64,000 bases of DNA from Octopus sinensis (lineage: Eukaryota), in contig NC_042998.1 in the NCBI RefSeq assembly GCF_006345805.1, forward strand, positions 21,576,001 to 21,640,000, read 5' to 3'. Under the pieces are notes generated by a model that did no database searches, had not been told where the DNA came from, and saw only the letters and a list, made by a program, of their open reading frames with translations. Made by a program: the position numbers and the translations under genes. This document shows positions 20,510-51,183 of this stretch, piece after piece (position 1 is the first letter of the stretch; each line of letters starts with the position of its first letter).

Positions 20510-20620
20510 AGACTACACCTCGAACCAGGACACATTGAAAGTAAAATGAAGGCGGCACTTTTCGTCACAATTTTCTGCTTTTTTCCAACCGGCCTTGCTG
20601 CTATTTTTTATGCACATAGA
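20510..20620 (+). CDS. Gene A exon 3, CD225 N-terminal half
   Basis: catttcAG / GTAAGT, 111 nt: RLHLEPGHIESKMKAALFVTIFCFFPTGLAAIFYAHR. Same length as paralog exon 45431..45541. Confidence 0.9.
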
Positions 20621-20886
20621 GTAAGTACTTTTTATCCAATTGTGGGTGTGTGGTAAGATGTTTGCTTCCCAACTACATAGCTCCGAGTTCAGTTCTGTTG
20701 CATCTTTCGCGAGTGTACACATACACACACACACACATACATACATACATACATACATACATACATACATACATACATACATATATAAATTTTTGCGTGG
20801 GAATCTATGGGGATTGGTGTTAGGCGAAGAGAAGTGGTGAATTGCCACATTAAGGAGCAAAGGAATGGAGGGAGAAGATTAATTCT

Positions 20887-23710
20887 TGTTCACGACGAAG
20901 GCGGGAGCCCAGATGGCTCCTGTGCAGAGAATTCGAACACAGGCAGATGTTGCAGAGAATGACCGGTGGAGCGGAGTTGGTGTGAGACCGGAGTGTCATT
21001 GCCAAGTCTTGATGAGACCTTATACCTTGTGTATGTGTGTTCGATACTGTTTATATCCCTTGAGTTGCTTCTAGTTCATATTTGATTATATATATGTGTG
21101 TATTTTGTGTGTGTGTGCATGTACGAGGGGATACCCGTAAGTAACCGGAAAGGTTCTCTGAGGGTGAAACCATTTGTAGTTCAGGATACCAATGCTAGAA
21201 GCCACTTCATGTGACCCCCCAGACATCAATTTGCCAACTGGCGGCTTTCGGTGGGGGTCGTACTTCCACGTCGTGCTCTTTGTTTTGCAGTGCTTCACCC
21301 ATGTTCGTCGATATTTACGATAGCTGAAAGGAAGGGACATCGTGCTTTCGTGGAATTCTGTTTTCTGTATTCGCGAGACTATCAAAACGTTCTCTCTCGA
21401 CTCTTACCGAACTCTACTCTTTGTAAGAGTTCGATTAGTCCATTCTTCCACCCCACCCCCAGCGGTGTCGATGTTTCTCACCACAACTTCTTCCCCATTT
21501 GAGATTGATTTCCGCTGGAAGTTAATATCATTTATTTATTTATCTATTTTTCTTTCATCACATCTCCTTTTCTGAGATTTTCCTCCTAGGGAAGTTTAAT
21601 ATTTCTTCCGTTTAGGCACTACATCCATCCGTTCTGTATGTCTCCTCTTTCTTGTGCTCCTATGACTAGGTTCGATTTATTGCGGCGTAGGAACATCAAA
21701 AGTGTAATAGGTATCTCTTGTCTTTTTCCGTATATCTATTTTTTAGCTGGCTTAAATGCTTTTTGTGTACCCATTTTCACCTCTTATCATATATTTCATT
21801 TTGTCTATTCATTTTGTTCCTACCCCGTCTTCCCAACCTTGTCTTCCACTTTTACATATTTTGAAAAACACCTTGTCACCGATATTAAAAAACTTTGTCG
21901 TATTTTTAGTGTTTTCCCCATTTGGTTTTCTTATTGGTAGCAGCTTGTCAAAATTTGACTTTATTTTTCGAGCAAGCATTAATTCCGCGGGTGAAAAAGC
22001 GCTTGGGTCCTATAAACCTTCAAGAATTGCGTCAATGCTTCGTCATCGACTATCACTTTTTTTCCTGTAATGCACTTTTTAATTGTATTGTTTGTTGTTT
22101 GTTTGTTCCTTCTCGAGCCATGCCTGGCTCATAAGGGCCGGTTTCCCGGTTTCTTGGCGTATAGGTTTCCCACCTGGACGGGACGCCAGTCCGTCGCAAG
22201 TGAGCTGCAAGATGCAGGAGGAAAGAGTGAGAGAAAGTTGTGGAGAAAGAGTCAGCAGAAGTTCGCCATTACCTTCTGCCGGAGCCGCGTGGAGCTTGGG
22301 TGTTTCGCTCATAAACACACACATCGCCCGGTCTGAGATTCGAAGCGGCGATCCCTCGACCGCAAGTCCGCTGCTCTAACCACTAGGCCATGTGCCTTCA
22401 CTTTTTAATGTATCCACGAACCTTTTTGCTTGCCCGTTAGATATTGGGTGATATGGTGGAGAAATATGCTTAATTGAGTACATTTCGGAAAAAATTCTTA
22501 AATTCATTCGCCGTGAATTGTGTACTGTTATCAGAGACTATGGTATCCGCGACACCATACCTAGCAAAAAGTTCGAGTAGAAATTCGACTGTTACTGTGG
22601 ATGTCGATTTGCTACATTTACGCATTTCTGGCCATTTTGTATAGGTTTTTTTTTTTTTACTCTTTTACTTGTTTCAGTCATTTGACTGCGGCCATGCTGA
22701 AGCATCGCCTTTTAATCGAGCAACTCGACCCCGGGACTTATTCTTTGTAAGCCCAGTACTTATTCTATCGGTCTCTTTTGCCGAACTGCTAAGTGAAGGG
22801 AACGTAAACACACCAATAAATCGGTTGTCAAGCAATGCTAAAGGGTCAAACACAGACACATACACACACACATATATATATATATATATATATATATACG
22901 ACAGGCTTCTTTCAGTTTCCGTCTACCAAATCCACTCACAAGGCATTGGGCGGCCCGGGGCTATAGCAGAAGACACTTGCCCAAGATGCCACGCAGTGGA
23001 ACTGAACCCGGAACCATGTGGTTGGTTAGCAAGCTACTTACCACACAGCCACTCCTGCGCCTACCATTACTAAATAATAGCTGTCTACCATTACTAAATA
23101 ATATGATCGATTTAACGGTTCTGCTAAGTCTATGTGTATTCTGGACCATGGAATATCGGTTTTGGGCCGATGTTGAAATTTTATAGGTGGTGATTTCGCT
23201 GCAAGAGCACACTCTCTGCAGAATTTTACCAACTTCTTGATATATATATCCATTTTTGGCCAGTAAACATAACTCCTCATAAGCGACTTCATTCTAGAAA
23301 TTTCTGGATATCCAGTGTGGAGTTCATTTAACATTCGACCTTGTAGTGAGGTAGGCATTACGACTCTCTGTGCATACATTATCACATGTCGAATACAAAT
23401 TTGAAACTGTGTTACGCACAGTCACGAGTATTTTTTTATTTGTTTCTTCTGATCTCACTATTTTTTTCATTTTAATAATAACTCGTCCGTCTCTGCCTTA
23501 ATTTTTATTTCCTCCAATGTCACAGGCAATTCACACACAACATTGCACAATATATCTTTCATTTCATTTTCTGTTTTTAACGCTGCTATCACTGTGTCTT
23601 CAACTAGTTCACTATATTTTGGTATTAATATTGACAAACCATTTGCATGTCCCAATTTTTTTCGATGGCGGGTACTTCATTTTGAAGTCGTAATTCAGTA
23701 GAATCATTCC
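20887..23710 (-). mobile_element. Degenerate Ty3/Gypsy LTR retrotransposon (pol fragments) in intron 3 of gene A
   Basis: 23710..23470 RNaseH-end/connection (WGMILLNYDFKMKY...GHANGLS); 23385..23090 integrase H2C2 + rve start (LNELHTGYP...YVYWPKMD...CRECA...WSRIHIDLA); 22010..21580 IN C-terminus (SPAELMLARKIKSNFDKLLP...GDKVFF). PPT-like aaaaggaga then TG at 21562; LTR end uncertain. Confidence 0.7.
22657..23062 (-). mobile_element. SINE family C copy nested in Gypsy remnant
   Basis: Matches the family C consensus. Confidence 0.85.
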
Positions 23711-23726
23711 CCATGGATGAAATGAA

Positions 23727-48710: not shown

Positions 48711-50393
48711 ATACATACATATATGTTTGGTTGGGGGCATATCAATCTTACTGAAAGGTTACTAGTGAAGTTAGGCTTATAGTACTTCAGGTTAATTCGA
48801 GGGGTTCTGGGCAGGTAAGGTTCACTCCTGTCCTCTAGCTTTCCTTTTTCAACTTCCGTTTTTAGCTTGTAGGTTTAGGCTAAGTCATCAACATGAGTTA
48901 TTTTGTGGTGTTTTAGTACTTCGTTTTTTTTTTTAAGCGGAGATTGTATAACTGTATAAACTTGACAATGCAACCTCTACAATCAGGTGACATTTTGTCT
49001 AAATGCACAAGAATCCCTTTTCTTTTTGAGTTCCTTCACTGGTATGTGCATTTTCCTTACATGTTGATTTGTTCTTAGAGGAATCTGTGTGGAATATAAT
49101 GCTTTTTGATATACTGAAAAGGTTGTCTTCGAATCCAGCTAGTTTCGGATTAGTTGAAGGAAACTTCTGAGTTTTAAATAAATATTATAGCATCTCATTG
49201 ATTGTGGTGTTTCTTATCCTGCGGTGGATAAAAGAAATAGTATTCTCGAAGAGATCTTTTAAATATTCTTAATGTTGTTTTGGGGTGGCAACGGGATCTC
49301 CTTGATGGTAAGTTTTGCTATATTATGGTAGACTGATTTAGCAGCCCGGTGTAAGATGAGAATTAATACGATAAGTATATGGAGTTAGATAATCCAGGTG
49401 GCCGCCCTGGATCATTAAGTGTGTGTGTGTGGTGGTATAAAGTGCTAGTTAGCTTTTGTTTGTCGCAGCGTTTGATGTAATCTGGTCAGCTGACTTACAA
49501 TCTCCTATACCAAACCCAAAAAAGGGCGTTGTTCAGCTGCCTCTGTCTATGCTATGTCTCCAGGTTGCTTTATTTTTTTCTGTGGAGCAGTGCATGCATC
49601 GGTCGAATATTTCCAAAGTGGAGGCAGTATGTGTTGTGACCTGGTCTTGTGCCCTTGATGATCCTAAGGGAAGTGTTTGTCCCCTCAGAAGAATTAGGTA
49701 ATGGCAAACAGTCAAGACATACACTTATTGCATTAACACATTTTAACAACAAAAAATTAGGTATCTATGATATTCCAGGCATTTTCAGGCTGTATTTGGA
49801 TTATATTATCTAACGTGATATTATCTACTATCATTTTTTAAAGAAAGCATGTTGTGATTTGAAGAATTTAGCTGCTGTTTCTAACAGCGTCAGTTGAGTT
49901 GTCTCCTAGTGGTTATGTCATAGACTAATTGTGGCTCTGTCATGGAATTGATAAGCATTTAACTGATGATCTGACAGGAGAAGCAAAACAAAAGTCCCTA
50001 AATAAAATCAAATGAACAGCATGATTGTAATAATTGTGATAAGGGTCCTTATATAAAGAAGGGTCACCTGTAATACTTGTCTGTTCCGTTATGTCTAACA
50101 ATAACCACTCCACGTATTTTAACCACATCAGTCTTTTTCCGCTCATCTCTTATATCTTTGCCAACTTACCATGTCATTATAAATAAGGTTTCTATTCATC
50201 CAGTGTAAATATAATAGCTCGAACACGAAAGCAGCAACGGGTTTTGGTAAAATATCTACTTTCATAAGAGCAATGGTTATGAAACTGATAAATAATATCA
50301 GTTCATCATCACCACACCCACACTATAAAAACATTAGTAGAATATATAGTCATGCCAGCATCCCACCATCCATCCTTTTATTAAGAACAAACT

Positions 50394-50778
50394 TTTGGAA
50401 GCACTCCGTCGGTTACGACGACGAGGGTTCCGGTTGATCCGATCAACGGAGCAGCCTGCTCGTGAAATTAACGTGTAAGTGGCTGAGCACTCCACAGACA
50501 CGTGTACCCTTAACGTAGGTAAGGGGATATTCAGCGTGACACAGAGAGTGACAAGGCCGGCCCTTTGAAATACAGGTACAACAGAAACAGGAAGTAAGAG
50601 TGAGAGAAAGTTGTGGTGAAAGAGTACAGCAGGGATCACCTCCATCCCCTGCCGGAGCCGCGTGGAGCTTTAGATGTTTTCGCTCAATAAACACTCACAA
50701 CGCCCGGTCTGGGAATCGAAACCGCGATCCTACGACCGCGAGTCCGCTGCCCTAACCACTGGGCCATTGCGCCTCCAC
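50394..50778 (-). mobile_element. SINE family B with 11-bp TSD
   Basis: aagaacaaact at 50383..50393 and 50779..50789; empty site in gene A near 25689. Confidence 0.9.
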
Positions 50779-51033
50779 AAGAACAAACTATATTTGTTGT
50801 TAAGGCGGTGAGCTGGTAGAATCGATGGAACTCCATGCAAAATGTTTAGTATTGTATCGTCAGCCTTAAAATATCTAAGTTCAAAATCGGCCGAGGTCAA
50901 CTCTACCCTTTATCTTTTTGGGGTCGATAAGTACTAGTTGTTGGCCTTGTGCCAACATTTGAAACAAATGTATTTGTTTCTGAGTTCTGTTTACATGTTT
51001 TAAATAAAAAAAAACTTTCATTTTACCTTCTAG

Positions 51034-51183
51034 GCACAAACAATGGCCCTATCCGGTAATATAGAAGGTGCACAGGAAGCAAACGCTGGTGCAGGAAGGC
51101 TAATCAAAATATCAATGATTGTTGGTTTTTTCATTATTATGATTTTAATTATTCTACGCTTTGCTGTGATTAGAGGATTGTGA
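51034..51183 (+). CDS. Gene B exon 4, CD225 loop + TM helix + stop
   Basis: ttttaccttctAG; AQTMALSGNIEGAQEANAGAGRLIKISMIVGFFIIMILIILRFAVIRGL*. Confidence 0.88.
   Translation, partial: AQTMALSGNIEGAQEANAGAGRLIKISMIVGFFIIMILIILRFAVIRGL

Follow-up and report, generated by a model that had tools for sequence, protein, structure and literature searches.

Accelerated divergence in the CD225 domain of tandem octopus dispanin genes points to probable diversifying selection

We analysed a 64,000-nt stretch of the Octopus sinensis genome (NCBI RefSeq assembly GCF_006345805.1, contig NC_042998.1, positions 21,576,001–21,640,000 of the forward strand), referred to here as the window. It is repeat-rich eukaryotic DNA and holds two tandem four-exon genes, A and B, on the + strand (Table 1). 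Both encode predicted proteins of the CD225/dispanin superfamily, and part of their CD225 domain has probably evolved under recurrent positive selection. The exon 3 pair was located by a six-frame search of the window for the motif FCFFPTG, which returned two sites, both on the + strand. The first exons, each with 10 nt of coding sequence, were located via the start of the orthologous gene in O. bimaculoides. The 10-nt start and the donor of gene A are identical to those of this orthologue (locus L003, position 10001), and the 5′ flank of the exon is conserved with gene B. The start of gene B has its orthologous position at L003 35923, and a 199-aa product is annotated there. Exon 2 of gene A aligns to exon 2 of O. 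bimaculoides LOC106884205 (P0263).

The predicted proteins measure 233 aa (A) and 257 aa (B). Exons 1 and 2 encode a proline-rich N-terminus of 145–170 aa, and each protein carries 6–7 PPxY motifs. Kyte–Doolittle windows revealed two hydrophobic segments in each protein, with about 158 and 183 aa, respectively, preceding helix 1. The initial annotation of the pair, made from the letters alone, had reported that reading frames, splice sites and the core motif are retained. This is confirmed in all nine family genes sampled from four species, which all have open frames and canonical splice sites and, where sampled, an exon 3 of 111 nt in phase 0.

Table 1. Positions of genes, exons and other features in the window (SINE, short interspersed nuclear element).
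Feature	Position	Strand	Description
Gene A	281–26105	+	Four coding exons
Gene A exon 1, coding part	281–290	+	ATGGAAGACA then gtaagt; phase 1, 10 nt
Gene A exon 2	14225–14652	+	Proline-rich N-terminal region with PPxY repeats; open frame, AG acceptor, GTAAGC donor
Gene A intron 2, last 49 nt	20461–20509	+	84% identical to B counterpart (45382–45430)
Gene A exon 3	20510–20620	+	Juxtamembrane segment and first hydrophobic helix with FCFFPTG; 111 nt, phase 0, AG/GT; part of the Pfam CD225 match
Gene A intron 3 interior	21123–25532	+	Insertion specific to the window's lineage; without counterpart in O. bimaculoides, not alignable with B
Gene A intron 3 end	25711–25952	+	Old SINE-derived segment and 92-nt stretch before exon 4; 82% A–B identity (B counterpart 50788–51033)
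Gene A exon 4	25953–26105	+	Cytoplasmic loop (GDSAG), second helix and stop codon; from self-comparison of the window
Gene B	36551–51183	+	Four coding exons
Gene B exon 1, coding part	36551–36560	+	ATGGAAGCTA then gtaagt; pattern from O. bimaculoides gene start
Gene B exon 2	44077–44579	+	Proline-rich N-terminal region
Gene B exon 3	45431–45541	+	111 nt, phase 0, AG/GT
Young interspersed repeat in gene B intron 3	50396–50780	−	Interrupts A–B collinearity; 96–97% identical to copies at 31027–31411 and 40861–41245
Gene B exon 4	51034–51183	+	Includes stop codon; from self-comparison of the window
Gene C, last exon	62403–62570	−	Third CD225 gene, remainder outside the window; from tblastn and synteny with O. 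bimaculoides L001

The initial annotation had proposed that the coding exons of A and B diverge faster than the adjacent introns. Its counts were reproduced exactly for exon 3 (31/111 nt differ, 16/37 aa identical) and for the first 43 codons of exon 4 (50/129 nt differ, 14/43 aa identical). The intron counts were recovered as well, with 8 differences (84% identity) in the 49 nt 5′ of exon 3, and about 90% identity and one 4-nt gap between the 92 and 96 nt 5′ of exon 4. For exon 3, the Nei–Gojobori proportions of non-synonymous and synonymous differences (pN and pS) were 0.287 and 0.253, close to the earlier estimates of 0.29 and 0.24. The intron stretches chosen at that time lie, however, at the conserved end of the A–B non-coding range. 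In unselected flanks, non-coding divergence was 0.21 at 100 nt (684 sites) and 0.24 at 200 nt (1,388 sites), and in collinear BLAST-aligned blocks over the whole duplicated unit it was 0.16 (3,390 sites).

A comparison with equal-sized non-coding windows placed the excess in exon 4. Its 59/147 differences were reached by 0 of 1,261 such windows, and the 90/258 differences of exons 3 and 4 together by 0 of 414, while the 31/111 of exon 3 were reached by 9% of 111-nt windows. The observation that coding exons outpace introns is confirmed; it is strongest for exon 4 and extends across the family and to orthologues, and on raw nucleotide divergence exon 3 alone is unexceptional. Over both exons, A and B differ with a pN of 0.377 and a pS of 0.260, giving an omega (ratio of non-synonymous to synonymous change) of 1.64, and pN exceeds the non-coding rate with p = 3e-6 to 8e-5. 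Other pairs in the family repeat the contrast; V264 and the O. bimaculoides family member Z (Z_obi), for example, differ at 0.15–0.23 in the intron and at 0.40 in exon 4.

The same pattern was found between species. Over 42 kb, the window runs collinear with chromosome CM046602.1 of O. bimaculoides, at 77–98% identity per aligned block, and this collinearity identifies LOC106884205 (P0263) as the syntenic orthologue of gene A. Orthologue non-coding divergence was 0.0906 over 14,227 sites. Exons 3 and 4 of gene A differ from their orthologue at 47/261 positions (18%), which lies in the top 0.5% of equal-sized non-coding windows, with a pN of 0.194, a pS of 0.133 and an omega of 1.54. The comparison of this pN with the non-coding value of 0.091 gave a Fisher p of 5.6e-6. 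Exon 4 accounts for 24 differences in 150 nt (pN 0.186, pS 0.081, omega 2.5), and exon 2 has an omega of about 0.5. Gene C, the third CD225 gene, behaves likewise in its exon 4, with a pN of 0.22, a pS of 0.105 and an omega of about 2.3 (pN versus non-coding, p = 1e-5). The yardstick put forward with the initial annotation was intron-wide neutral divergence; the non-coding values of 0.16–0.24 for A–B and 0.091 for the orthologues lie below the exon pN of 0.377 and 0.194.

Conversion or constraint in the intron ends had been named earlier as an alternative source of the contrast. It does not explain the orthologue comparison, in which all 33 aligned non-coding blocks fall between 0.04 and 0.13; on this range, a special conservation of the intron ends is rejected for the orthologues. 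Conversion between A and B is irrelevant across species and so cannot account for the orthologue contrast. In a broader form of this idea, A and B would be an old pair in which conversion or unequal crossing-over had made the introns and flanks alike, while the exons escaped; introns would then look young and exons old. Such concerted evolution of non-coding DNA would fit the unusual similarity of the 92–120 nt 5′ of exon 4 (p = 0.09, against an average of 0.16–0.24), the frequency of conversion in tandem arrays, and a neighbour-joining (NJ) tree of exon 3 that groups B with O. vulgaris genes and not with A. Yet the exon-over-intron excess recurs between syntenic orthologues of different species, and A–B non-coding similarity is fairly even across the unit of about 36 kb instead of being concentrated in exon-adjacent tracts. 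The longest perfect A–B match near exon 4 is estimated at about 30 nt, and about 0.5 such runs are expected per 2 kb or so at p = 0.2. The tracts would moreover need to end at each border of both exons, which itself would require selection against converted exons. We consider homogenised introns a very unlikely source of the contrast.

Exchange could also have been directed at the exons, with short conversions from distant family members importing clusters of differences into exons 3 and 4 and raising both dN and dS, with no selection on single replacements. Several paralogues do lie within 100 kb, the trees of exon 3 and exon 4 are discordant, and in exon 3 of the gene A orthologues pS reaches 0.216, above the non-coding 0.091. 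The differences between the gene A orthologues are nevertheless scattered, with 17 derived in the window's lineage and 20 in that of O. bimaculoides, which argues against one conversion event, and many of the derived states match no sampled paralogue. In exon 4, pS (0.081) is not raised while pN is 0.186, and the flanking introns are free of imported differences. An origin of the excess by exon-directed exchange is, in our judgement, highly improbable.

To describe variation among sites, we fitted a self-written GY94/F3x4 codon model to 80 ungapped codons of nine sequences, paralogues and orthologues sampled from four species. Under model M0, omega was 0.98–1.01 family-wide, although about 23–25% of sites have an omega below 0.03; M1a placed about 25% of sites at 0.03. 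M2a assigned about 21% of sites to a class with omega near 3 and a majority of sites to omega = 1. On intron-informed trees of the nine sequences, twice the log-likelihood difference (2ΔlnL) of M2a over M1a was 18.3–20.8; an NJ tree of seven sequences gave 27.5. With exon 4 alone and an NJ tree built from it, the value was 24.1, while exon 3 alone gave 4.4, which is not significant; exon 3 was not significant in any test. The signal lies in exon 4, with the cytoplasmic loop and the second helix, and not in exon 3. Sites with a posterior above 0.9 comprise one juxtamembrane position, two positions in helix 2 and four in the loop, of which one reached this level on the alternative tree only. In 74 simulations under the M1a null, three values exceeded 5.99 and the maximum was 7.96, so the test behaves as expected. 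A Biopython pairwise maximum-likelihood omega of 9.2 for exon 4 was unstable and was not used.

After repeated tandem duplication, most of the domain in the redundant copies might drift neutrally under relaxed constraint, with omega near 1, the apparent excess then stemming from small samples, easy hydrophobic swaps in a helix and local differences in mutation rate. The family-wide M0 omega fits such drift, as do pairwise omega values that span 0.5 to 1.6, non-significant Fisher tests of non-synonymous against synonymous sites, orthologue non-coding windows that reach 31/111 differences, and the large M2a class at omega = 1. What neutral drift cannot produce, however, is a pN twice as high as non-coding divergence (0.194 versus 0.091, p = 6e-6; 0.377 versus 0.16–0.24). 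Relaxed constraint corresponds exactly to M1a, which is rejected with a 2ΔlnL of 18–27 against a simulated maximum below 8, and frames, splice sites and the invariant core are kept in 9/9 genes. These observations make drift under relaxed constraint unlikely.

The best explanation, with a probability of roughly two in three (0.68), is that a portion of the CD225 domain has been under recurrent positive (diversifying) selection. Positive selection, as suggested in the initial annotation, is supported by a pN of about twice the non-coding rate in paralogues and orthologues and by the rejection of M1a; the pairwise omega, exon 3 taken alone and the average omega of 1.0 make the case weaker than was claimed. 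Relative to the neutral rate, pN lies above non-coding divergence and a site class has an omega above 1, the model being self-written and the data set small. Several points weigh against positive selection. On synonymous sites alone, pairwise omega values of 1.2–1.6 do not exceed 1 significantly (p = 0.06–0.19), and Fisher tests of non-synonymous versus synonymous sites gave p = 0.057 for A–B, which is borderline, 0.19 for the A orthologues and 0.067 for C. The family-wide average omega is 1.0, and only 86–87 codons are available per pair. A good part of exon 4 is transmembrane helix, where hydrophobic residues swap easily. The codon model was checked by simulation only and is not PAML; recombining paralogues can give false-positive site tests, and the NJ trees of exons 3 and 4 do differ. 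Finally, non-coding divergence taken from local alignments is biased slightly low.

A and B are members of the CD225/dispanin superfamily, whose features are two helices, a conserved loop intron, the motifs G-D and A-x6-A in the loop and a double cysteine (PMC3282796). The Pfam CD225 profile (PF04505) gave 38.4 bits for A and 54.5 bits for B, with a gathering cut-off of 27.1. Both proteins have the dispanin layout of a long N-terminus, two hydrophobic helices joined by a short loop and a very short C-terminus, and the dispanin loop intron is present, as the exon 3/exon 4 junction lies in phase 0 just 3′ of helix 1 in all nine genes. Read from the translations, the loop of A contains SGD and lacks the first alanine of A-x6-A, and that of B contains G-N and the complete A-x6-A. 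Helix 1 of both has a single cysteine (F-C-F) and not C-C.

In a sequence search of the PDB, the only meaningful match was PRRT1/SynDIG4 (9zks chain M; E = 4e-5), which spans helix 1, the loop and helix 2 and reads CFWPTGI where the octopus proteins have CFFPTGI. Related metazoan matches carry source names of the PRRT1/PRRT2/TUSC5/TRARG1-like kind, and vertebrate IFITMs were absent from the relatives returned by protein, profile and PDB sequence searches. A word-indexed protein search with the A domain gave no match, whereas an exhaustive HMMER search reached octopus relatives. Together with the profile search, it returned octopus proteins with the source names 'annexin A7-like', 'PRRT1-like' and 'WASF2'. 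The first and last of these, which the family now bears, are mislabels that seem to reflect proline-rich N-termini.

The 'IFITM-like' label of the initial annotation applies at the superfamily level only, because the nearest solved relative is PRRT1; the four exons, the long PPxY N-terminus and the single cysteine agree with this narrower use. IFITMs form dispanin subfamily A and arose within vertebrates, and invertebrate dispanins resemble subfamilies C and D, with an extra N-terminal exon (PMC3282796). A and B match the superfamily and not its vertebrate IFITM subfamily. Like IFITM1-3, they have the CD225 superfamily domain, a conserved intron that parts the two helices, a GxxxG-type loop motif, an N-terminal PPxY and an arrangement in tandem clusters. 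The IFITM N-terminus is short, whereas the octopus N-termini run to 145–170 aa with 6–7 PPxY motifs. IFITMs also have two coding exons and the double-cysteine motif (PMC3282796), in contrast to four coding exons and one cysteine in the octopus genes. With PRRT1/SynDIG4, of dispanin subfamily D, the octopus genes share a proline-rich N-terminus on one or more extra upstream exons and a compatible exon layout, and several octopus members are named 'PRRT1-like' by NCBI. They differ from it in forming a fast-evolving tandem array with a family-average omega of 1.0, and their closeness to it is that of a sequence match.

A and B are paralogues arranged in tandem and belong to an expansion of CD225/dispanin membrane proteins in the octopus lineage; the array includes gene C and, in O. 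bimaculoides, gene Z. Each predicted protein has three parts: a long proline-rich PPxY N-terminus (exons 1–2), helix 1 with an invariant VT-FCF-PTG-AI core (exon 3), and, in exon 4, a short loop that carries a motif of the GxxxG/G-D type and leads into the second helix. If diversifying selection has shaped the domain, introns, flanks and synonymous sites would change at a roughly neutral rate. About one-fifth of the CD225-domain codons, mostly in the exon 4 loop and the second helix, would have been replaced repeatedly at 2–4 times that rate, in paralogues and orthologues alike. Selection would then act on a membrane-embedded and juxtamembrane surface, with a core that stays strictly conserved, and the selected loop and helix 2 sites would point to likely partner-binding places.

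The selective agent may be a changing partner, either a component of a pathogen or a membrane protein of the host that co-evolves. An arms race of the kind seen in vertebrate antiviral IFITMs, put forward in the initial annotation, is a conjecture for A and B. In a bolder proposal, octopuses would have turned a lineage of PRRT1-like dispanins independently into rapidly diversifying membrane factors for restriction or recognition, encoded in a tandem array and analogous by convergence to the vertebrate IFITMs. Such an array might also draw diversity from cross-gene splicing. We regard this proposal as speculative and rather doubtful. To our knowledge, octopuses lack interferons.

Positive selection in IFITMs is already known, having been reported in primates, bats and chicken (PMC6907390, PMC6451222, PMC3499546), and so is the faster evolution of exons than of introns in venom and defence genes. 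Phospholipases A2 and three-finger toxins of snake venom and mammalian trappins resemble the octopus genes in being tandem duplicates with coding sequence that evolves faster than introns and flanks and with dN at or above dS (PMC6062510, PMC2474615, PMC2831891). Those products are, however, secreted and have known targets, whereas the octopus product is a predicted small two-helix membrane protein whose accelerated part includes a transmembrane helix. Among molluscs, Aplysia has a multi-copy set of 10 'IFITM-like' CD225-domain genes, regarded as candidate antiviral effectors and, unlike the octopus genes, assigned by domain alone (PMC9334734).

A literature search found nothing that joins CD225 with octopus or 'proline-rich transmembrane protein 1' with cephalopods, and the texts it returned for 'interferon-induced transmembrane' with Octopus concern other animals. 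If confirmed, the array would stand as a clear example of adaptive protein evolution in a family of cephalopod membrane proteins, for which this search returned no earlier report. It would also offer a candidate locus for recognition at the cell surface or for cell-intrinsic defence in cephalopods, a field with few known effectors. Fast, selection-driven evolution of the CD225 domain would then not be limited to vertebrate IFITMs.

The family extends beyond A and B. Gene C is convergent with them and orthologous to O. bimaculoides XP_014790937, with 33/54 aa identical in the last exon. In O. bimaculoides there is a fourth member, Z, upstream of A, and O. vulgaris and O. sinensis have three tandem members. 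Past exon 1, the O. bimaculoides orthologue of gene B was not returned by the profile search or by a search with full-length B; this part falls in the 15-kb gap between L003 and L001 (CM046602.1 16,817,848–16,833,154). In O. vulgaris, P0001 (L002 10001–37494) is closest to A in its exon 2 region and closest to B in exons 3–4, with a 21-kb intron between the two parts that is free of other CD225 exons. This mixed affinity argues against P0001 as a one-to-one orthologue of A or B, and a one-to-one relationship does not seem to hold between the two octopus lineages. The pattern would reflect either lineage-specific duplication or a deletion that fused two genes. A 42-nt segment just 3′ of the exon 3 donor (window 20621–20700 versus 45542–45671) is kept in B and the O. 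vulgaris paralogues and is missing from A and its O. bimaculoides orthologue, and this common deletion is therefore a marker of the A lineage.

Some annotated isoforms cross gene borders or end differently. The O. sinensis NCBI isoform model X4 (P0006; L005 10001–56892) joins exons 1–2 of one family gene to exons 3–4 of the next, 40 kb away. Exon 2 ends and exon 3 borders are all in phase 0 across the family, and cross-gene splicing would therefore stay in frame. A truncated exon-3-like fragment lies at O. sinensis L005 52575–52640. Isoform X2 (P0153) of the O. bimaculoides gene A orthologue (L003 10001–32023) has an alternative last exon that encodes the peptide YFIDPEKMKGKVNLGG and is without the second helix; this peptide may be SINE-derived.

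The A–B alignment of intron 3 covers only the first 90 nt or so and about the last 360 nt. The interior of this intron in gene A is absent from the O. bimaculoides orthologue, where L003 25473–26035 spans the gap, and it is therefore a lineage-specific insertion and not diverged ancestral intron. The ancestral intron was accordingly short, and its ends are not conserved islands in a saturated intron. The SINE-derived segment 5′ of exon 4 sits at a shared position in most of the compared paralogues, and a 46-nt deletion in this region is common to A, B and the O. bimaculoides A gene. Separate insertions of the same SINE were rejected as the source of the intron similarity, because of this shared position and because the element and its unique flanks are collinear. 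G2_sin and the SINE head of V264 gave no convincing alignment to this segment.

A (CAT/CAG)n microsatellite lies 60–200 nt 5′ of exon 3 in both genes (20300–20460 in A, 45260–45390 in B). The same repeat precedes exon 3 in both O. vulgaris paralogues examined (L002, L004); the flank of O. bimaculoides gene C differs and has an AT-rich repeat instead. Copies of the young repeat of about 385 nt in gene B intron 3 are nearly identical (Table 1), which indicates that the element was recently active, and older copies lie at 18580–18952 and 22215–22401. Intron 2 of gene A also holds arrays of a 27-nt minisatellite at 15746–16431 and 16540–16925, split by a SINE at 16383–16625 and open in all three frames. 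The minisatellite unit is the PPPEYQSQP-coding repeat of exon 2. The window segment 15814–16886 has no counterpart in O. bimaculoides, and the exon-derived repeat has therefore expanded inside the intron in the window's lineage.

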